Shown in pieces: positions 8,101 to 61,269 of a DNA stretch of 64,000 nucleotides. Position numbers and translations under genes: made by a program. The number at the start of each line of letters is the position of its first letter. Position 1 is the stretch's first letter. The stretch lies in the NCBI RefSeq assembly GCF_016433145.1, contig NC_058130.1, forward strand, positions 710,237,874 to 710,301,873, read 5' to 3'. Source of the DNA: Gracilinanus agilis. Taxonomy: Eukaryota. Below the pieces are notes generated by a model, which ran no database searches, was not told the DNA's origin, and saw only the letters and a program-made list of their open reading frames with translations.

Positions 8101-10356
8101 TGCCCCAGGGCAGGGGGACAGGACCTGGCTGGGTTGGGCAGGGTGGGGCAGGACAAAGCTGGAGGCCCCGGGGGCGGGGGGGGGCTGTCCGGGGGCGGTG
8201 GCCGAGGCTGGTTGAAACTAGCCGGAGAGGGGCCCGGCTCGGCCCCTCCTTAGGACCTGGCAGGAACCGGGTCTCCAGGCTCTGGGCCCCGCCCCTTCCT
8301 GTGACCTTATTTGGATTTAGAGCTGAGACTGGGAAGGCGGAGTCAGAGAGTCCGAATGGGGGTGGGGGGGAAAGGGGGCAGGACCCTGAAGGACCAGCTG
8401 GGCCGAAGTCCTGAGTCCGAGAGCTGGAGGTGGAATTACGAGGACCAGAGCTTGAATCTGGCGGGACGCAGGCTTAGGACGCTGAGCGGGGGTCTGGGAG
8501 TTGTGGTGGAATTTGACCAGGCAAAGACTGGAGGAAAACGGAGGGAAGCGACTTAGAGGAAAGACCCACGGGGTACTAAGGGGCAGAAATTCCGAGGCAG
8601 GGGGTCTCAGGGCCAGGGTTTAGGGATCTTCTTCGAGGGATTTGGTGGACAAAGGTTCAGAGACAGGACAATTCTATAGGGTCTCAAGGGTCTGTAGAAG
8701 AGATCTGGAGAAACAGGAATAAATAAGGGGTACCTGATAGGGCAGAGGTTTAGTGGCCTGCATAAAGGTCAGGCATCTGGTGGGCAGGATGTCCCAATTA
8801 ACTTTCAGACTGTGCCCCTTCGTCTCCCCTGGAAGCCAGGGGCAGACAATATCCTAGATTCCCCCTTCAGTTACTATAGCAATGACAAGAGCTGGGGGGG
8901 GGGCATTCCCTTCTCTAAGGTATATCACCCCAATCAGGGCTCTATTGGGAACCCCCTTAAAAGGATCCCATGACTATAGGGGGCAGTTAGGGTTCATCTC
9001 ACTTCTCTGGCATCCTTCCCATCCCTGACTTCTGAGACCTGCTGGGTTTGGGCAGGGAGGGGGAAGCTGTCTCACAGGTGAATTAAACTCTAGTCTATTC
9101 AGGCCTCCCCCTCAAGCCAGCCAATGACACAAGAGACTAAAGATGAAGACAAAAACACTATGTAGCCTTTTCTCCCAAGTCCAGACTTCCTGCATCCTTC
9201 CATCCTCACCAGAATCCCAGACATTTTGGAAACACCCAGAAGAGTTGGACTATTGGGGGGTGCTTAGAGAAGGGGCTCATTTACTTTCTGAGGCAGGTCT
9301 GAACCTTTTCCAGTTGTGGAAGGAAGGTGGTCCTATCTATGCCCCCTGCTTTGGGAGGAGCCATTTGTGTACCTGTTCCCCCTGGCTCTCCCCAGATCCC
9401 AGTCCCCTTCAGACCCATTGCCACATTTCCGGCAGTTAGCTCTTTCTTAAGCAAGTTTCCCAGGAAGAAAGGCAGGGATAGGAGCCACCCTGGGGAGTTG
9501 TCCTGGATACCAACCCAGAGCCCAAGGGGGAGGAAGTGAGGTGAAAACAAGCTTTAGGCTTGGAGTCAGGGAATTTGGGCTCTAGGCAGCTCTCTGCTTC
9601 TTACTTACTACCTTTGAGCCCTTGGGCAAATAAGTCCCTGCCTCCTAGATTTCCTACCATAGAATAAATGGGGGGAAGGGGATTGATTAATTTAATGATT
9701 TCTAAGACATCTTCTAGCTCTGATAATCTGTGATTCTTTGGGGATAGGAACCCAGGCATCCCCACCCCTCCGGTCTGGCCTCTTATTAAGGGAGCAAGAG
9801 GAACTAGAGTTGGGGGCTAAGAGGGGTGACCAGATGCTGGAGTTCCCAATTCACAGATAACCCCAGCCACCCCCCCCCACTTGCCTGCTTCTCAGTTCTA
9901 GGTCCTCCGGTACCCCCTCCCAATACACAAGCAGTAGGCATATCTTTGGGTCTTTGGACTGTGAGGCTGGAGTACTAGTATGTGAGGATCAGGCAGGCAC
10001 CAAGTAGGTTACAGACATTGTGTGACAGGGAAGGGGGATGGGTTGGTGGGGGGGGGTAGGAGGTGGGTGGCTCTTTGTAGTAGAGGGGTCGATGAATTTC
10101 AGTGGGAGCTTATTACAGCAGCTTCTCGATTCAGAACTTCATGGCTTCCGACTCCCCAAGTTAGTCTTTGGACCCCCCCTCATAGATCACTGTACACCAG
10201 GGCCCCTCTACCTAGCTCTGTCTCCCAGACCCTGTTTCTCCGCCGCCCGGCTTCCAGCCCCCTACTCCGGCCCCTAGTTCCCCGATCTCCCAGGCCCATC
10301 CCAGTACAGTCCCAGCCCAGCCCTGTCCTTGCCCGGCCCTGTCCCGCCGCCGCCGC

Positions 10357-10992: not shown

Positions 10993-12057
10993 ATGTGCAC
11001 GAAGATGGAACAACCTTTCTACCACGATGACTCGTACCCGGCCGCAGCTTATGGCCGGGGAGGTCCCGGCCCACTCGGACTCCACGACTACAAGCTGCTG
11101 AAACAGAACCTGGCTCTCAATCTGGCCGCTGCCACTGACCCCTACCGCGGCCTCAAGGCGCCAGGGCACGGTAGGGGACCGGGGCCAGAGGACGCGGGTG
11201 GCGCCTACTTTTCGGGACCGCCACCTCCTCCTCAGAACGAGGCCCCAGCGGGCTCGTTGAAGCTCGCGTCTCCGGAGCTGGAGCGCCTCATAGCGCAGAA
11301 CAGCAACGGGCTCATCACCACAACGCCCACGCCGCCGGGCCAGTACTTCTACTCACGCAGTGTGACGGAGGAGCAGGAGGGTTTCGCAGATGGCTTCGTC
11401 AAAGCGCTTGACGACCTGCACAAGATGAACCACGTGACGCCCCCCAACGTGTCACTGAGCAGCAGCAGTGGCAGCTCCGGGACCGCAGGGCCCCCAGCTC
11501 CTCCTAGTAGCGTTTATGGTCCCTCGGCTCTGGGCCCTGAACCACCTCCTGTCTACACCAACCTCACCAGTTACAGTGCCAGCGGAGGTAGTGGGGGTGC
11601 GGGCGCAGGGGCCGCGGGCGGCTACCCTACTGCCACCATCAGCTACCTCCCACACGGACCGCCCTTCCCCGGGGGCCACCCAGCAGCGGTGGGGCTGAGC
11701 GCTCGGGCTGCGGGGCCGCTGGCGGCCTTCAAGGAGGAACCTCAGACGGTGCCCGAGGCGCGCAGCAGGGACGGGACACCACCAGTGTCACCCATCAACA
11801 TGGAGGACCAGGAGCGCATCAAAGTGGAGAGGAAACGACTGCGAAACCGGTTGGCTGCTACCAAGTGCCGCAAACGGAAGCTGGAGCGCATCGCGCGACT
11901 CGAGGACAAGGTGAAGACGCTCAAGTCCGAAAACGCTGGGCTGTCGAACACGGCCAGCCTTCTCCGTGAACAGGTGGCGCAGCTCAAGCAGAAGGTGCTG
12001 AGCCACGTCAACAGCGGCTGCCAGCTGCTGCTGGCCGTCAAGATGCAGAACTTCTGA
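10993..12057 (+). CDS. JUNB: Transcription factor JunB (AP-1 bZIP), intronless, 354 aa
   Basis: The ORF starts [15 protein letters not shown] and has the delta region [54 protein letters not shown] and the b[42 protein letters not shown]. Synteny with PRDX2 and RNASEH2A supports the call. Confidence 0.99.
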
Positions 12058-47580: not shown

Positions 47581-48785
47581 CAAAACACAATGAATTTTAA
47601 AGGATAACTTAAAGAGTTTGGATACAACAGTACAAAAGTATAAGGAACTGGACAAAGAAATTGAACAAAAGAAAGGAGAGTAGGCTAAATTGACTTCAAA
47701 AGATTACAAAAGCCCTTTAATATTAAGCACTAAGCTTCTCATGAAAGTGAAGGCCCATCTTTTTAATAGTAATGTTCTATTGGCATTGCTATCAGGCAAC
47801 AAAATAGGAATATAAGAGTCTCTGAAGAAAAGTATGTGTGGTGTGGTGTGAATGAGCTATAACACAAAACCAGTGTTGAGCCTTGAAAAGTAGGACTAAC
47901 TGATGTAAAAAAGAAAAAGAATTGTATGCTAGGAAGAGAAGATGGTTTGGTAGTGTGACAAGGATCAGGGTTGACAAATAGAAAGCTAGGATGCCCCAAA
48001 GCAGCTAGGTGACACAGTGGATAGAGTGCTAGGCTTGGAATCAGGAAGATATTTGTTCAAATCCAGTCTCAGAAACTAACTATATGACCTTGGGCAAATC
48101 ACTGAATGTCTGTTTTATCAGTTTCCCTGATTGTAAAATGGGGATAAGAATAGTACCTACCTTCTGGGTTTTTTTGAGGATCAAATGAAATAGTAAAGCA
48201 CATAACACAGTGCTTGGCAAATAATAGATACTACATATGTGCTTATGTCTTTCCCTTCCCCTTCCCCAGAAGCTTCTTGAGTATGGCATCAAGAGTATGC
48301 CCTTGAAGATAACAGAGTGATAGGGAAAAAATATAGCAAACTCCTTCTCTCCCACCTCCACCCTCAAGCAGATCTAGAAAATGCAAGTTCTCATCAGGAA
48401 ATCCAAGAAAAAAAAATCAGTGTGTCATTTTTTCCAGGCCAGGTCAGGAGAGGGAGGCACAGAGGTCTACTAGTCAGAGCATGCCTACATAAGGAGAGTC
48501 TGTGCTTTAGAATGGGAAAAGGTCCTAAATCTAGCCCAAAGGGGACTAAACTTCTGCAGGGTTCAGGAAAAGATACAAAACTAGCATATATTTGCTTATA
48601 ATCCAGTTCTGGATCTCAGGTCCAGGGTGGCCTGAGGAGGAGACCTACATGTAAAGGAGTGGTCAATGGCTCTAGGATATATACTGATTAAGAAGCAAGT
48701 TCAAGGAAGCAGTAGTGTGGCTCAGGCCCTAGTCATGGACTATGGTCTTAGTTCTTATTAATAGCCCAGCCTGAAGCCTATATAG

Positions 48786-49001
48786 CCACTTTGGGGAACC
48801 TATGGCATATGTGCCAGAGGAGGCTGCTCCCCTCTCCTTCTCCACAAGTGCCTGAGGACATTTCTCACTTCACTTGCCCCTCTGCCCAACAGCCCGATGG
48901 GAGCACTTCCTCCCCTGTCTAGGGTAAGGTGGGAGGCTCACATGCTGCATGAGGAGGGTTGCAGTTTGGGCACTCGGTCTCTAAAAGGTTCACCATCGCT
49001 G
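48786..49001 (+). mobile_element. hAT (Charlie-type) MITE
   Basis: Perfect 8-bp TSD CTATATAG at 48778-48785 and 49002-49009. 3' TIR AGGTTCACCATCGCTG; degenerate 5' TIR ...GAACCTATGGCA. Confidence 0.8.
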
Positions 49002-49804
49002 CTATATAGGAATAATAGGCATCCCAGAACAAAGAGGAGCCTACAGTTCTGTCATTCTTTACCAAAAGAGATTTCTAACTATGACAGTGCCTGAGCTTAG
49101 CAACAGTCTATTAGAACTCAAAATGGGGCAAACCCATAAGTATGATGCTCAGACCCAACTCCAGGTCAGAAACTTTCAGGACTCAGACTAGAAAGGCAGG
49201 AATACAACTTTTCCTGGATCACAGAACTTTTGGGACACTGCTGTAGTTGTCTCTGAGATTCTGGAATAATGCAACAGTTGATACCTCAAGAAAACAGTAG
49301 CAGAACTAGTCTACACGTGCCCTTCAGTGTGCAGAGACCAGCCCTAAAGTCCAAAAGCAAGAAGTAAGCCAGAAAAATGAGTAAGCAAAAAAAGAATCCT
49401 ACTATAAAAAGCTGCTATTATGGTGATAGGGAAGCTCAAGGCACAAATCTAGCAGAAGAAAATGATTCCAAAGCATTTCAATGACTCAAAAAAAAAAAAA
49501 AAAGATACCTTAAGTACAAATTTAACAAACTGTTTGAAGAGATAAAGCAAGATGTAGGCCTTAAAGAATTTAAATTACATTTTATTTTATCAATTATCAA
49601 ATATTTCCTTTTTCTCCCTCAACGTCCCTCCTCTATTCCACTGAACAAAAAGGAAAACAAAATACTTATAACAAATATGCATCATCAAGTAAAACAAATT
49701 CCCATATTGGTCATTTCCAAAAATGTATGTTTCATTCTGCATCTTAAGTCCATTAACTCTCTAGCAGGAGGTGAGCAACAGGTTTCACCTTTTATGCTCT
49801 AGAC

Positions 49805-50070: not shown

Positions 50071-50316
50071 GTGGAGCCAAACAATTTTGTTTTATTCTTG
50101 AAAACTCTTACCTTCTGTCTTAGAATTGATATCCGTTAGGGGCAAATGAACTGTAAAGGGCTAAGCAATCGGAGTTAAATGACTTGCCCAGGGTCACACA
50201 GCTAGGAAGTGTCCAAGGTTAGACTTGCCAGGACTCAGCTCTCTCTCCCCTCCTAGCCACCTTGGGTATCCCAAAGCAAACACTTTTGAAGGATTTAAGA
50301 ACCCTGGGCAAGACAA

Positions 50317-50400
50317 TGAGTCACCTGACTCATGAGGGGCGGGGTCACGCGCATGCTCCAATCCTGATTGGATCCGCGCGGCCCGCAGCCACAAGTCGAG
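50317..50400 (+). promoter_or_regulatory. Compact promoter-like module directly upstream of the V-ATPase d retrogene
   Basis: Motifs seen: TGAGTCA (50317-50323) and TGACTCA (50326-50332) forming a palindrome, GC box GGGGCGGGG (50336-50344), GTCACGCGCATGC, CCAAT and ATTGG. The patch is CpG-rich within otherwise CpG-poor DNA. Confidence 0.6.
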
Positions 50401-51456
50401 ATGTTTTCTTTCGCTGAGCTCCACTTCAACGCAGACAACGGCTACTTGGAGGGGCTGGTCCGGGGCTTAAAGACGGGCTTGCTAACCCACTTCGATTACA
50501 CAAACCTGGTGCAGTGCGAGTCGCTGGAGGATCTGAAACTCCACCTCCAGACTACAGCCTACGGGAACTTCCTGGCGAATGAGGTCTCCCCACTCTCTGT
50601 GTCCATCATTGACGACAGAATGAGGGAGAAGATGGTGTCAGAGTTCTTCTACCTGAGGAACCAGGCGTATGAACCGCTGAGCAAGTTCCTGGACTTCATC
50701 ACCTACAGCTACATGATCGACAACGTCATCCTGCTGTTAACGGGCACCCTCCACGAGCGCTCCATCTCCGAGCTCATGCCCAAGTGCCACCCTCTGGGCC
50801 ACTTTGATCAGATAGAGGCCGTGAACATCGCTCAGACACAAGAAGAACTGTACAACGCTATCTTGGTGGACTCTCCGCTCGCTATCTTCTTCCAGACCCA
50901 CTTTTCCAAGGAGGAGCTCCAGCAGCTGAACATCGAAATCCTCCGCAACACGATGTACAAATCCTACCTGGAGTCTTTCTATCAGTTCTGCACCCTGCTG
51001 GGGGGCACCACAGCAGAGGTCATGAATCCCATCTTGGAATTTGAGGCCGACCGCAGGGTCTTCATCATCACCATCAACTCGTTTGGCACCGAACTCTCCA
51101 AGCAGGCCCGGGCCAAACTCTTTCCGAATTGTGGGCTGCTCTACCCGCATGGTCAGGCCCTGCTGGCACAGGCGACTGAGTTCAAGGAGGTCAAAGCTGT
51201 GGCCGACTTCTACCCACAATATAAAGAGCTTTTTGAAGCGGTTGGCTCCAATGCTGGAGGTAAGACCTTGGAGGACCGATTCTTTGAGCACGAGGTGAAC
51301 CTGAACAAGCTGGCCTTTCTCAGACAGTTCCACTTTGGCATCTTCTACGCTTTCGTGAAGCTTAAGGAGCAGGAGTGCCGGAATGTTGTGTGGATTGCTG
51401 AGTGCATCGCCCAGAACCACCGCAACAAGATCAGAAATTACATTGACATCTTCTAG
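50401..51456 (+). CDS. ATP6V0D1-like: Intact intronless V-type proton ATPase subunit d1-like retrogene (351 aa)
   Basis: The protein runs [24 protein letters not shown]...[17 protein letters not shown]...PKCHPLG...ILEFEADRR...[12 protein letters not shown]...[32 protein letters not shown]. It has the same length as d1, no introns, and no stops or frameshifts. The ORF-track TTG at 50368 is not the likely start; the ATG at 50401 aligns with d1 Met1. Confidence 0.93.
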
Positions 51457-52184
51457 CCTCCTCTTCCGATTCCTGGATTCCATGGGGCTCTGTGGGTATG
51501 GGTCCTCACATGTCCATGGTACTGGGCATGCATTCTACTGTTCTGGCCTATTCCATATATACCTAATGTTGAAGTAGAGTTCCCTCTTCCTTCCCCCAAA
51601 TGGACTTGGTCCTCTGTAGCTATCTAGAGTGGTGGGGGACTAAAATCCTAGCATCAGCGCTGAACCCCTACCCCCACCAATAGCCTCTGTAACATCTGTG
51701 TTGTTAAAACTCTTGCTCTAGGAGATAAATACAGGGGTCCCCCTGTCTCAACATTTACAGCTGTTTAAGGCATCTTGGTCACACTTTGATACTCCTTTAG
51801 GGAAAGCCAGTTTGATTGCCCCATATGTTACCTGGCTCTTCTTGCCAGTCTCCTCCTCCTAGCTGCTGCCCCAACACTCTATCCCCAGTGGAAGAAGGAT
51901 ATCTATGTTTTAGGGGCAGGAGAGTAACCCAGATAATCATCCCTCTTCCTGACATATACACATACACATATATAAGTACACACGTACACAACAGACTGCA
52001 CTGCTTCTCCCCAAACCAGCACAAGCCAGGACTCTGGCTCTGGCAACTAAGGAGCTTTGCCTCTCCCTACCATCCTCAGGCAGGAGATTTTGGGATAGAA
52101 GTCAGGGGACTGTGCAGATTCTCCTCCAAATCCTGAGATATCTTTCTTCTTTCAAACACTTTGAGTTTTTTTGTTTCTCTTAAC

Positions 52185-52222
52185 AATAAAGTTGCCTATT
52201 CTGTGAATAAATAAATAAATAA
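52185..52222 (+). terminator. Poly(A) signal and possible decayed poly(A) tail of the d1-like retrocopy
   Basis: AATAAA at 52185-52190 is followed about 16 nt later by (AATA)n, ~730 nt after the stop codon. Confidence 0.5.
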
Positions 52223-52999
52223 ATGGCATAGTTTTTAAAAAAAGGACTTGAGAACTGATCAATATAATGACCAACCATGATTCCAGAAGACTCGTGATGA
52301 AACATGCTCCCCACCTCCTGATAAGAGAAGTGAAACAATGTGGATTGACATATTTTTCTCTACAGGACCAATGTAGGTTTTTGTTTGTTTGACTATCCAT
52401 GTTTGGAACAGAGATTTTGTTCTTTCTTTTTCACTTGGAAGGAGGGAGGAAGTAAGAGAGAAGACAGATTTTTGTTGATTGAAAAAAAATTTATTTTTAA
52501 AATGTAAAAAGAGGATATGTTTGTTAATTAGACAAAATGGATGGCTGAAAGGAGAGAGACTGCCCTGCTCCTACATACCTGTGACAAAACCTTGAAATTT
52601 GCACCAGATGAGTAAGGATCAAGAAACCTAATGAGAAACTCCAGAGATTTTTTCTCAGAGTTGTAGAAGAGGTCAGTTAGAAACCCAAGAGAGAAAGAGG
52701 GCTACCAGTAAAGCCAGTGCAAGTGTTCAGTAGCTTCCTAGTGTGACCAGAAGCAGGCCAGAGAAATGTTTAGTTTGCAGGGTTCTGGGTCTGCAGGCAG
52801 CAGGAGCAGAAGGATTCCTCAAGAAAGCTCATGGGAGTCAGAAGGCCCCTAAGTAGGAACCTTGGAAGCCCTAGAGAGAAAGGCAGCAAGAAACATGGGG
52901 CTGCAGTACTCAGATAGGGACATCCCAGGGCCTCTGAGGTGTCTTAATGTTCTGGCCTGAGATGCCACAGAGGATCCTAAAAATCCATCACTCTGAACT

Positions 53000-58721: not shown

Positions 58722-58988
58722 CTAGGGGCCGCTACCGCTACCGCTGCCCCCGCTGCCACTGCCAAACCCCACTGGAGGGAGGAGCAGTGAGCGGCGTCTG
58801 AGCCGGTTGTTCCGGGGCCCTCGAGGTCGGGGCAGTCGCCCGGCTGGGCAGGCGGTGCTGAATGGGGTCTCTGGGCCAGGTGGCTTCGAGTCAGAGATGG
58901 AGAGCTGAAGGCAGGGACAGGGAGCAGGTGCAGCAACCAGGTAGTCTCCCAGAGCAGAATTGCACAGGTCTCGGGCATCCAGGAAGGT
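58722..58988 (-). CDS. RTBDN: Retbindin, last coding exon (267 nt)
   Basis: ctgcag|ACC TTC... encodes TFLDARDLCNSALGDYLVAAPAPCPCLQLSIS...RLRRRSLLLPPVGFGSGSGGSGSGSGP*. It shares the human-like LC.SALG motif and terminal GSGSGP. Confidence 0.92.
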   Translation of the reverse strand, partial: TFLDARDLCNSALGDYLVAAPAPCPCLQLSISDSKPPGPETPFSTACPAGRLPRPRGPRNNRLRRRSLLLPPVGFGSGSGGSGSGSGP

Positions 58989-59349
58989 CTGCAGGACCAG
59001 ATCAGGATCAATAGCATTTGAGGGTCAGGGTTAGATCTCTATTTAGTTGGGGAAGGAGGTAAGAGGTGAGACTAAGGGTAGAGGAGAGGAGCTAAGCAAT
59101 CAATGAAGTGGGGAACCAGGATAACAAGAGAATAGAGCCCTGCTCATAGGATGAGGGCCAGATATGAACCAGGTGGCAAGGGAGGCGGTGAGGTTCATGT
59201 TTAGTGTCTTTCTGAGAACCTGTAGGCTCAAGGAGAGAGGGGGAGGTCAGATAGGGGCTGGGCCAAGACCATGGGAAAGTAAAGTATAGAGGACCATGAC
59301 CCTGTAGGACCTGGGGCCACTTGGACTTGGACTTTTGGTGGGTCCTCAC

Positions 59350-59446
59350 CTGGTCAAAGGTGAGACAGCCACCCTCACAACTCCCTCCTTCTGGTTGGAA
59401 GAGCCAATTCCGGCCACAGGTCAGGTCATCTCTGCAGGCTGAAAAC
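59350..59446 (-). CDS. RTBDN: Retbindin, coding exon 4 (97 nt)
   Basis: Encodes FSACRDDLTCGRNWLFQPEGGSCEGGCLTFDQ; donor |gtgagg. Folate receptor / riboflavin-binding protein Cys pattern. Confidence 0.93.
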
Positions 59447-60275
59447 CTGAGCAGGGAGAGAGACAACTAGGGAATCAGGGTCTCAGAAATGGAAGTTTTG
59501 CTAGTGTAGTCCTACCCTTTCTTTCAACACTCCAGACTCAGGGGACAGGGGTCTGAACTGACAAAACTAACCAGCCATAATTGGAGCTCAGGTGTCCTGA
59601 TCCCAATCCCAGACTCTTGTCCCTTCTCATGACTGGATTACTAAACAAATGACTTCTCAGAAACCAAGTTTCTGTCTTCAGTGGATGCTGCCTAAGCAGT
59701 TTTATTTGCTTTCCTAAAGTTAGGCTTTGGCCATATCCTTTCCCCACTTCAGTCGAAAATACTCTGTGGCCACAAACTCCAATCCAAATATTCAAAATCC
59801 TCTGACTTGTGGCCCATTCTCCAACCCTGTTTCTCACAGCCTCCCTATTCCAATCTCCCTAGGCTACCCATAGCCAGGCAAGTCTCTATACCACCTCCCC
59901 TCTCCTCACCTACCCCCTGTCCCACCCCCCACATGAAGGTGCCCCAGGTCTTCCTGCCTCTGGAACTTAATCACCATGGCCCCACCTGGAATGACCCACT
60001 GGGGTCTCAGCTTCTTCCACCTTCTACCACAGCTAGATTAATAGCATCATTTGGTCAAGGATGACCAGGACAGAACTCTACAGCAGGCTCCTTTGCACCT
60101 TAATTGAAATTTCTGCCTTCCTTGTGGACCCCCCCCCCCCCCAGTACTGTCTCATTCCTGCCTCCCTCCAGTCAGGTCCCTCCCCTCAAACTGCCTCAGA
60201 CTCCTAACTATATTTCTACCCTAAGGCAAGCTCTCAGAAGGGCCCATTCATGCCCTTGAGTTTATCCACTCTTAC

Positions 60276-60404
60276 CACTGGTCACAGAAAGCAGCACAAA
60301 CTGGCAGGGCCTGGACACTTCCATGTTTCTCAGGATGGGCCCAGTTGCCTGCCAGTGATGAGCAGTAGAGGAAACGGGAGAGGCTTTGTAGAAAGGTTTC
60401 ACAC
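60276..60404 (-). CDS. RTBDN: Retbindin, coding exon 3 (129 nt)
   Basis: ctccag|G TGT GAA... encodes CETFLQSLSRFLYCSSLAGNWAHPEKHGSVQALPVCAAFCDQW; donor |gtaag. Confidence 0.9.
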
Positions 60405-60706
60405 CTGGAGGAGCCCAGGAGAGATTACAGATTAGAGAATGCAGAGCCTCAGACAACTGACTCTGAAGACACATAACCAGCAGAGTAGCCTAGGGCAGCA
60501 GGGACTGTAGAGTGTTCGGAGGGGGAAGTAATTGAAGCCCAGATTTTTTTTCTAGGTTAGACTTAAAGTGATGTGGGGCATCACTATGGCTGTGTCCTTG
60601 AGTGTCTTCAAATACATGTAAAAAGCATGCAAATCCTCTAGTGCATCAATTATCCATCTATTCCAGGATGGTCCAGCAGTGGAAGGGATGGAAGGACTAC
60701 ACTCAC

Positions 60707-60767
60707 CTGGGGCTCAGGCCCCCACAGCGGTCCCAAATGAGGCAGATGCCTGCCATTATGGGGGAGC
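60707..60767 (-). CDS. RTBDN: Retbindin, coding exon 2 (61 nt)
   Basis: ttttctcttccaccccag|GC TCC CCC... encodes GSPIMAGICLIWDRCGGLSPR; donor |gtgagt. Phases match both neighbours. Confidence 0.8.
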
Positions 60768-60949
60768 CTGGGGTGGAAGAGAAAAGGTAAGTTTTGCTGG
60801 AAGAGGGACTGTCACATGGGATGGAGGACATCAGCTAGGACTGCCCTCCCCTGAAGTTCTTTGGTCCTGGAATGTGAGAGGGACTCTTGTTGCTCTTGGG
60901 GCCTCCATGGGAAGCAAGATTATGGTGACTTGAGTCAGCCTTAGGGTAA

Positions 60950-60952
<3 letters not shown>

Positions 60953-60985
<33 letters not shown>
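60953..60985. repeat. (GT)n microsatellite in an RTBDN intron
   Basis: About 16 GT units. Confidence 0.99.
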
Positions 60986-60986
<1 letters not shown>

Positions 60987-61082
60987 TTTTCCTAAATGAA
61001 TTCAGAGAGGTGGGAAGTCCAGAGAGAAGGGGAACTATCTGTCTATCCTAGGAAGATCAGAAAGGGGAGGGATATCACTTAC

Positions 61083-61269
61083 CAGTAGAACGGAGTCCAC
61101 ACCAACTTGGTGCCCCATCAAACTTGGGCTCCTTGTTGACTTGTTCAGTGCCTAGGCATTTGGAGCTAGCAGCACCACCATCATTTCCAGCCAGCCCTAA
61201 GGTCCCTGGGGTCCCCAGCAGACTCATAGCCCAGGCTAGACCTAGGACCCAAGTCACGCTGCCTCTCAT
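61083..61269 (-). CDS. RTBDN: Retbindin, first coding exon (signal peptide; 187 nt from the ATG)
   Basis: ctcag|GTG GAC ATG (as in the human ...SQ|VDM junction) leads to MRGSVTWVLGLAWAMSLLGTPG...KCLG...WCGLRST G|gtaagt. The full CDS, complement(join(58722..58988,59350..59446,60276..60404,60707..60767,61083..61269)), is 741 nt = 246 aa. Confidence 0.85.

Follow-up and report, generated by a model that had tools for sequence, protein, structure and literature searches.

An old, intact ATP6V0D1 retrogene in marsupials, a candidate third isoform of V-ATPase subunit d

Background

The mammalian V-ATPase nomenclature names just ATP6V0D1 and ATP6V0D2 as genes for subunit d (PMC2835735). An intronless reading frame for a third such protein in Gracilinanus agilis raises the question whether it is a dead copy, a relic on its way out or a working gene, and in the last case what its protein might do. 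We have analysed the stretch of 64,000 nt that holds this frame in assembly GCA_016433145.1, hereafter called the window, together with the corresponding loci of other marsupials. An earlier note on the window had proposed an old, functional and lineage-specific third d isoform, and in what follows we report how far the evidence carries that proposal.

Results and discussion

An intact reading frame for a V0 subunit d

A program-made ORF list gives a plus-strand ORF at 50368..51456, the single long one ending at 51456. Its CDS starts with the ATG at 50401, ends with the TAG at 51454-51456 and contains neither stop nor frameshift.

50401..51456, plus strand: CDS of 351 codons and a TAG stop, intact; V0 subunit d paralogue (d1-like, candidate d3)

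The predicted protein matches Pfam PF01992 (vATP-synt_AC39) over residues 16-347, which cover positions 1-339 of the 339 in the model (E=8.9e-97). Of the solved chains human d1 matches best (6wlw_Q, E=1.2e-184), aligned gap-free from 3-351 against 3-351, and rat d1 from solved V-ATPase structures likewise aligns gap-free (E about 1e-184). The ORF, the Pfam match and the d1 alignment agree with the full-length, intronless V0 subunit d of 351 aa that had been reported for this site. Identity to d1 is about 76%, and we counted 81 positions that differ from camel d1, in line with the roughly 80 substitutions estimated before; the core motifs quoted at that time, including KLKEQECRN, are all found in the window protein. 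On the opposite strand an ORF of 248 aa (50737..51483) is the kind of shadow that GC-rich coding frames usually cast.

An AlphaFold2 model of the window protein was obtained with pLDDT 81 and pTM 0.83. Foldseek aligned this model to the rat, human and bovine d1 chains in V-ATPase with TM 0.92-0.93 and rmsd 2.2-2.3 A, and to the higher-resolution yeast d chains with TM 0.81-0.87. As modelled, the window protein retains the all-helical d-subunit fold.

The residues that are kept or lost can be read against columns invariant across d1, d2 and invertebrate d. The window protein keeps 172 of these 192 columns and has changed the other 20, D53A, D166T, C167H, E170K, D174Q, E175Q and L252Q being among the changes. 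Taken over the six copies of the gene described below, 7-10% of the residues invariant in all other sampled animal d subunits are replaced, several of them acidic residues within 166-175 (E170K, D174Q/E, E175Q/H). The replacements are concentrated in residues 148-175 and 252-273, and conserved charges are lost. As the acidic residues of 166-175 are replaced, coupling or partner binding may differ from that of d1.

A processed copy of the ATP6V0D1 mRNA

The parental d1 gene has eight coding exons of conserved sizes over about 38-99 kb (camel, horse, bird and three dasyurid assemblies). It has AGRP upstream in camel, horse, bird and dasyurids, and HSD11B2 downstream at the camel and dasyurid loci. 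All seven parental introns are missing from the window copy, and the gene range of the copy equals its CDS length in each of the six species that have it. Parent and copy lie on separate chromosome records of the same assembly both in Antechinus (CM028218 and CM028217) and in Sarcophilus (CM109175 and CM109174). Their neighbours differ as well, the copy being found upstream of an RTBDN-like gene and the parent between AGRP and HSD11B2.

The limits of the copy were set against the dasyurid parent, the camel 3'UTR and promoter being too diverged. Homology to the dasyurid parent starts near -112 of the parental leader and reaches as far as the parental cleavage site, and this leader and 3'UTR homology along with an A-rich tail gives a retroposed unit of about 50303-52245. 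The unit and its 3' parts are as follows.

50303..52245, plus strand: whole processed retrocopy of the ATP6V0D1 mRNA, with leader, CDS, 3'UTR and poly(A) remnant
51457..52205, plus strand: inherited 3'UTR, aligning to the parental mRNA 3'UTR
52185..52190, plus strand: inherited AATAAA polyadenylation signal, in the context TTAACAATAAAGTTGCCTATTCTGTG that matches parental CTAACAATAAAGCTGCCCGTTCTGTG
52206..52245, plus strand: degenerate A-rich tract, a poly(A) tail remnant adjoining the end of parental homology

Nucleotides 1-785 of the parental 3'UTR can be aligned to the post-stop region in all six copies. For the window copy, parental nt 64-785 match post-stop nt 27-750 with 66.5% identity over 780 columns (E=1.6e-47), and the Trichosurus copy matches the parental 3'UTR with E=1.4e-73. 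The polyadenylation signal is mutated to AATGAA in the dasyurid copies. Homology to the parent ends at ...AACAATAAAG(C/T)TGCC..TTCTGTG, where TTCTGTG corresponds to 52199-52205; beyond this point the copies are A-rich (AATAAATAAATAAATAAAT...AAAAAAA) and the parent reads AGTCCAGTG. At the other end, a SINE insertion in australidelphians blurs the 5' boundary of the copy. After more than 70 My, target-site duplications would not be expected to survive.

Judged by its sequence, the window gene is a textbook processed retrocopy of ATP6V0D1. The absence of the parental introns and the presence of parental 5' leader, 3'UTR and poly(A) remnant bear out its earlier description as a retrogene.

Surroundings, orthologues and age

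Downstream of the retrocopy in the window we find one gene that serves as an anchor for synteny.

58722..61227, minus strand: folate-receptor-family gene, synteny anchor (gene call with Pfam Folate_rec)

We take this gene to be RTBDN, and on that assumption the earlier placement of the copy next to RTBDN holds. A minus-strand gene of the same family is also found downstream of the retrocopy in Trichosurus and Monodelphis. The surroundings had been called TE-rich, and the flanks do give many multi-copy SINE-like blastn matches. RNASEH2A, named earlier as the upstream neighbour, was sought among ten long ORFs at 21.9-39.8 kb, and these had no Pfam match, which is expected of short exons; an Rfam scan of 44-56 kb gave no match.

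Intact intronless orthologues are present in Monodelphis domestica, Dromiciops gliroides, Trichosurus vulpecula, Antechinus flavipes and Sarcophilus harrisii. With Gracilinanus these six species span four orders (Didelphimorphia, Microbiotheria, Diprotodontia and Dasyuromorphia), and on either side of the gene the flanks are collinear across the six loci. The Monodelphis protein differs from the window protein at 12 aa. No orthologue among those examined is disrupted, and collinear intact orthologues in four marsupial orders agree with the great age that had been claimed for the gene. Neither the best 120 matches nor the dasyurid cluster included an intact orthologue of the copy in koala, wombat, wallaby, bilby or dunnart. 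This gap in koala, wombat, macropod, bilby and dunnart may reflect lineage loss or merely missing annotation.

The retrocopies form a monophyletic clade (support 97/98). In a tree rooted with bird d1 this clade is sister to marsupial d1, and camel and horse d1 fall outside; the sister grouping has support of 99.6/96 under the codon model and 99.9/100 under the nucleotide model. The lineage specificity suggested previously is thereby seen in the tree, the clade being separate from eutherian d1. The 3'UTRs give a similar picture: those of the copies align along their whole length to the marsupial parental UTR, and eutherian and marsupial parental UTRs have just an island of 24-44 nt in common. 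Collinear orthologues and the rooted tree together place the insertion on the marsupial stem, later than the separation from eutherians and earlier than the radiation of the crown group, an interval that we take to be roughly 160 to 80 million years ago.

All copies also have a set of derived residues in common. Of the 332 columns invariant in the set of gnathostome d1 sequences compared, all six copies have replacements at 20, and at 10 of these the new residue is identical.

Replacements common to all copies (ten): S51T, M85L, H88Q, A148E, E170K, Q254L, R257Q, E262K, Q263E and E273Q

Selection on the protein

Pairwise dN/dS between copies is 0.10-0.27 for the six species, and the bootstrap intervals, computed for ten pairs in five species, are all below 0.4. 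Under the GY model in IQ-TREE the six copies have an omega of 0.166, and the fit with omega=1 is rejected (lnL -3526.0 against -3387.8 when free, 2dlnL=276). Omegas for single branches were obtained with purpose-written GY94 pruning likelihood code, which reproduced the one-ratio lnL and omega of IQ-TREE. Least-squares estimates of per-branch dN/dS from distances were discarded because dS was too noisy.

d1 parental branches: omega 0.008
Retrogene clade: omega 0.17-0.18, above the parent (p=8.5e-29)
Stem from the insertion to the marsupial crown: omega at least 1, above the later clade (p=0.022); against 1, p=0.64
Didelphid stem: omega 0.28-0.35, above the rest of the clade (p=0.004-0.006)
Didelphid crown: omega 0.08; Gracilinanus-Monodelphis pairwise dN/dS 0.10

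The Gracilinanus and Monodelphis CDSs are 95.6% identical, against about 87% in flanking DNA, and differ by 13 nonsynonymous and 33 synonymous changes. These comparisons of coding sequences show purifying selection on the retrocopy protein. An omega of 0.17 along with the rejection of omega=1 fits the functional gene that had been postulated, and values far below 1 are found where a relic would give values near 1. It should be noted that the constraint on the retrogene is about 20 times looser than on parental d1.

Most retrocopies are dead on arrival, and the repeat-rich intergenic location of this one would suit a neutral processed pseudogene whose frame had survived by chance, or selection acting at the RNA level alone. 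Against such an origin of the frame stands its integrity in all six lineages. Stop codons would be created by 3.4% of random substitutions in the retrocopy CDS, synonymous divergence among the copies reaches a pairwise dS of about 1.1-1.2, and by a rough estimate neutral evolution at this dS would give dozens of stops across the six lineages. Further, the rejection of omega=1 points to selection on amino-acid sites and not on nucleotides alone. We regard the neutral explanation as refuted as far as data of this kind can refute it, and would hardly give it any credence.

The didelphid branches raise another concern, namely that the gene was once functional, has become dispensable and is decaying in some lineages, with the window copy on its way out. 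The elevated omega on the didelphid stem would be expected if this were so, as would a didelphid amino-acid change about twice that of the australidelphian path. Australidelphian copies are 79-85% identical to d1, the window protein with its about 76% being the furthest diverged of all, and several marsupial genera are without an annotated orthologue among the matches listed. Yet the ORF is intact in both didelphids, omega on the didelphid stem remains under 1 (p=0.026 with 7 taxa and 3e-8 with 9 taxa), and the low dN/dS between Gracilinanus and Monodelphis together with the crown omega shows didelphid constraint to be strong now. Decay of the window copy hence appears very improbable to us.

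On the stem of the retrogene clade nearly all changes are nonsynonymous. One reading of this burst is that the copy came to encode a functional protein outside the canonical rotor role, for instance an assembly, regulatory or competitive factor, a factor acting independently of V-ATPase, or one that binds V0/V1 only in part. A V-ATPase-independent role in cell fusion has been proposed for d2. The stem omega of at least 1, which exceeds that of the later clade, and the ten replacements at gnathostome-d1-invariant sites, fixed for the whole marsupial radiation, would both be in accordance with such a shift. The same can be said of the clustering of changes in 148-175 and 252-273, which removes charges kept in all sampled d subunits, and of the loosened constraint relative to d1. 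Set against this, about 90% of the universally invariant d residues, the full length and the predicted fold are kept, and the stem omega is not distinguishable from 1, so that simple early relaxation accounts for it equally well. A role away from the rotor thus seems unlikely, though it deserves to be borne in mind more than the two preceding explanations.

The 5' leader, its CpG-rich domain and transcription

The sequence upstream of the CDS is derived from the parent and contains several short elements.

50303..50400, plus strand: parent-derived 5' leader with homology to the parental leader, candidate inherited promoter or 5'UTR
50320-50329: E-box GTCACCTGAC in the 5' leader
50336-50344: GC box GGGGCGGGG in the 5' leader
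50344-50356: GTCACGCGCATGC in the 5' leader
50358-50362: CCAAT in the 5' leader
50367-50371: ATTGG in the 5' leader
50201..51000, no strand: CpG-rich, island-like 5' domain, from the CpG observed/expected ratio (o/e)

The leader block, which has a second TCAC(G/A)-type box besides the E-box GTCACCTGA(C/T) and the GC box, can be aligned across the six copies and the dasyurid d1 genes, and the E-box core TCA..GA does not vary. GTCACCTGA itself is retained by five of the six copies. The same E-box is found in the camel and dasyurid d1 genes, the camel gene reading CGCGTCACCTGAT at -114..-102. Parental positions -112..-74 align with the Trichosurus, Antechinus and Sarcophilus copies, in Trichosurus over 39 nt with 89.7% identity (E=1.5e-10). 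A segment of the parental leader is kept in the didelphid copies and deleted in the australidelphian ones.

In each of the six species CpG o/e lies in the range 0.35-0.86 over the stretch from -200 to about +600. Elsewhere the values are lower, 0.13-0.23 for whole loci, mostly 0-0.3 in flanking bins and about 0-0.3 in the 3'UTR. The 3' half of the CDS is CpG-poorer under equal protein constraint, which would argue for a germline-unmethylated promoter of the island type and not for codon constraint alone. The inherited leader block may also be plain 5'UTR instead of promoter.

With respect to transcription, 15-17% of the sampled 31-mers were found in each of 23 small runs from 11 studies of a related organism, for which the label as RNA is a guess ('RNA?'). 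The share of 31-mers that the Monodelphis orthologue could contribute is 16.0%, mostly in the CDS, and the parental CDS shares at most 0.4%. As the fraction in the runs equals that shareable with Monodelphis and the parental share is tiny, these data sets contain the orthologue itself, essentially complete. When the search was limited to TRANSCRIPTOMIC and RNA-Seq libraries, no run with 31-mers of the copy was detected.

Relation to ATP6V0D1, ATP6V0D2 and other retrogenes

A canonical multi-exon d1 is present in the dasyurid assemblies that also have the copy, and d2 is present in Monodelphis and Macrotis. Since marsupials retain canonical d1 and d2, the retrocopy is a true third paralogue. 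The possibility raised earlier, that this might be the only d1 or d2 gene, does not hold, and the count of three isoforms that had been put forward stands.

The copies resemble ATP6V0D1 in belonging to the same Pfam family over the full length and in having 351 aa without indels, at 74-85% identity to marsupial d1 in the six copies, compared with 62-65% to marsupial d2. At the nucleotide level the copy and d1 are about 75% identical. The copies also have the whole 3'UTR and part of the 5' leader motifs in common with d1. They differ from it in being intronless and on another chromosome, in an omega of 0.17 against 0.008, and in the replacement of 20 d1-invariant sites in all copies, besides the full set of differences counted in the window copy.

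With ATP6V0D2 the likeness is one of position in the family, the retrocopy likewise being an extra d isoform besides the ubiquitous d1. d2 is the tissue-enriched isoform of kidney, osteoclast and other cells. The copies bear the d2 residue at 4-9 of the 53 columns that separate d1 from mammalian d2, which indicates some parallel change. Where columns are fixed but different in d1 and d2, they have the d2 residue at 1-2 of 15, and the majority residue of non-mammalian d2 is matched by 1 of the 20 shared derived changes and by 2 of the 29 didelphid-specific ones. In contrast to the retrocopy, d2 is an old multi-exon vertebrate paralogue, and its continued presence in marsupials leads us to reject the idea that the retrogene took over from a lost d2. 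Orthology of the copies to ATP6V0D2 was considered and rejected as well, as they branch with d1 and the d2 clade is separate at 100/100.

PGK2 is an example of a long-lived mammalian retrogene for an alternative subunit or isozyme. As in retrogenes of this type, we see a processed copy of a housekeeping mRNA, an early burst of amino-acid change and purifying selection for tens of millions of years. The rationale of movement out of the X chromosome is not evident here, as the parent is autosomal in placentals and lies in the same AGRP-HSD11B2 block in marsupials. A difference from PGK2-type retrogenes is that the copy seems to bring along parental promoter-proximal sequence, not a foreign promoter.

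The protein itself is already listed in public annotation as 'V-type proton ATPase subunit d 1-like' by NCBI and UniProt, and Ensembl predicts it as well (for example XP_056678665.1 and F7G807). A full-text literature search returned no paper describing a marsupial d1-like retrogene. With long-lived retrogenes a known class and the protein already predicted, the advance is incremental and not categorically new.

Proposed origin and function

The explanation that we favour, with a probability of roughly 70%, is that the window holds a functional protein-coding retrogene of ATP6V0D1, inserted upstream of RTBDN on the marsupial stem, using an inherited promoter and providing a third d isoform on the c-ring. 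A full-length ATP6V0D1 mRNA was reverse-transcribed and inserted there on the marsupial stem. The parental 5' leader with its block of E-box and GC box was kept along with it and may supply or have seeded the promoter, and this block now lies inside the CpG-rich domain maintained in the six species. Soon after insertion, about 20 replacements built up at sites otherwise frozen in vertebrate d1, with steady purifying selection on the protein thereafter. The retrogene protein would then replace d1 in some cells or conditions as the single-copy c-ring 'socket' coupling the D/F shaft of V1 with the rotor of V0.

Further, we may speculate on a more specialised 'd3' rotor socket, in which, in a cell type or life stage peculiar to marsupials, the remodelled surface would alter the efficiency of coupling, the reversible disassembly of V1-V0 or the binding of partners. 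The loss of acidic residues in 166-175 and the charge swaps in 254-273 could form the basis of such a surface. Specialisation of this kind is doubtful at present, and we would rank it below a role outside the rotor and above decay of the gene. If it were true, the V0 sector of marsupials would exist in a variant specific to their lineage.

Conclusions

The V-ATPase rotor has one copy of subunit d, whose sequence is nearly frozen, with 332 of 351 d1 positions identical across camel, bird, ray and shark. A third paralogue retained through the whole marsupial radiation is a natural experiment on it, showing which 'invariant' d residues may change while the protein remains useful. As an example of retroposition the locus is clean and datable, its hallmarks being preserved and parental promoter-proximal sequence apparently having been brought along. 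The maintained CpG-rich domain around the copy illustrates in a concrete case how retrocopies may avoid being dead on arrival. For V-ATPase biology, the retrogene adds a candidate for lineage-specific specialisation of the pump.

Sequence surrounding the retrogene

Upstream of the ATP6V0D1 retrogene, a block at 48501-49800 of the window shows 88-98% identity to Monodelphis in nearly all 100-nt bins (one bin is at 81%), while the nearby flanks lie below it in the same comparison, at roughly 85-88%. The block can also be aligned to Trichosurus and Dromiciops, at 72-77%. The Rfam search over 44-56 kb gave no match, and no Pfam-bearing ORF was seen in the block. The block may represent a conserved non-coding element, or it may belong to the 3' end of the upstream gene.

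Two further features of the window lie on the strand opposite to the retrogene:

50737-51483, (-), antisense ORF of 248 aa within the retrogene CDS
58722-61227, (-), folate-receptor-family gene, taken as RTBDN, 3' of the retrogene

The antisense ORF most probably arises as a side effect of the composition of the coding frame. The models of the folate-receptor-family neighbour are unlike between the two didelphids: the one in the window has 232 aa, and the Monodelphis one has 356 aa and extends past the end of the locus.

Silent-site changes in parent and retrogene

Since parent and retrogene split, synonymous changes, measured by branch lengths, have built up in the marsupial parental d1 (represented by the dasyurid loci L009-L012) to about half the retrogene's number. 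This suggests that silent sites are constrained at the parental locus, or that the local mutation rate is lower there.

Changes at the 3' and 5' ends of the orthologues

Dromiciops alone carries a SINE insertion in the 3'UTR of its orthologue (about 11365-11560 of locus L001); the element ends in an A-rich tail of its own and leaves the ORF untouched. The Antechinus and Sarcophilus copies (L002 and L005, about 11.9 kb) carry AATGAA in place of the inherited AATAAA, and just 3' of it a second AATAAA is present within the old poly(A)-tail remnant. This second AATAAA may have replaced the mutated signal in the dasyurid copies.

At the 5' end, the inherited leader of the australidelphian copies is adjoined by a SINE poly(A), about 100 nt 5' of the ATG:

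L002 and L005 (Antechinus and Sarcophilus), about 9880-9930, SINE poly(A) abutting the inherited 5' leader
L003 (a further australidelphian copy), about 9880-9915, SINE poly(A) abutting the inherited 5' leader

These copies have also lost about 18 nt of the parental leader, which the didelphids retain as GTCACGCGCATGCTCCAA. Through the SINE poly(A) and this deletion in australidelphians, the promoter-proximal context of the retrogene differs between the two marsupial branches.
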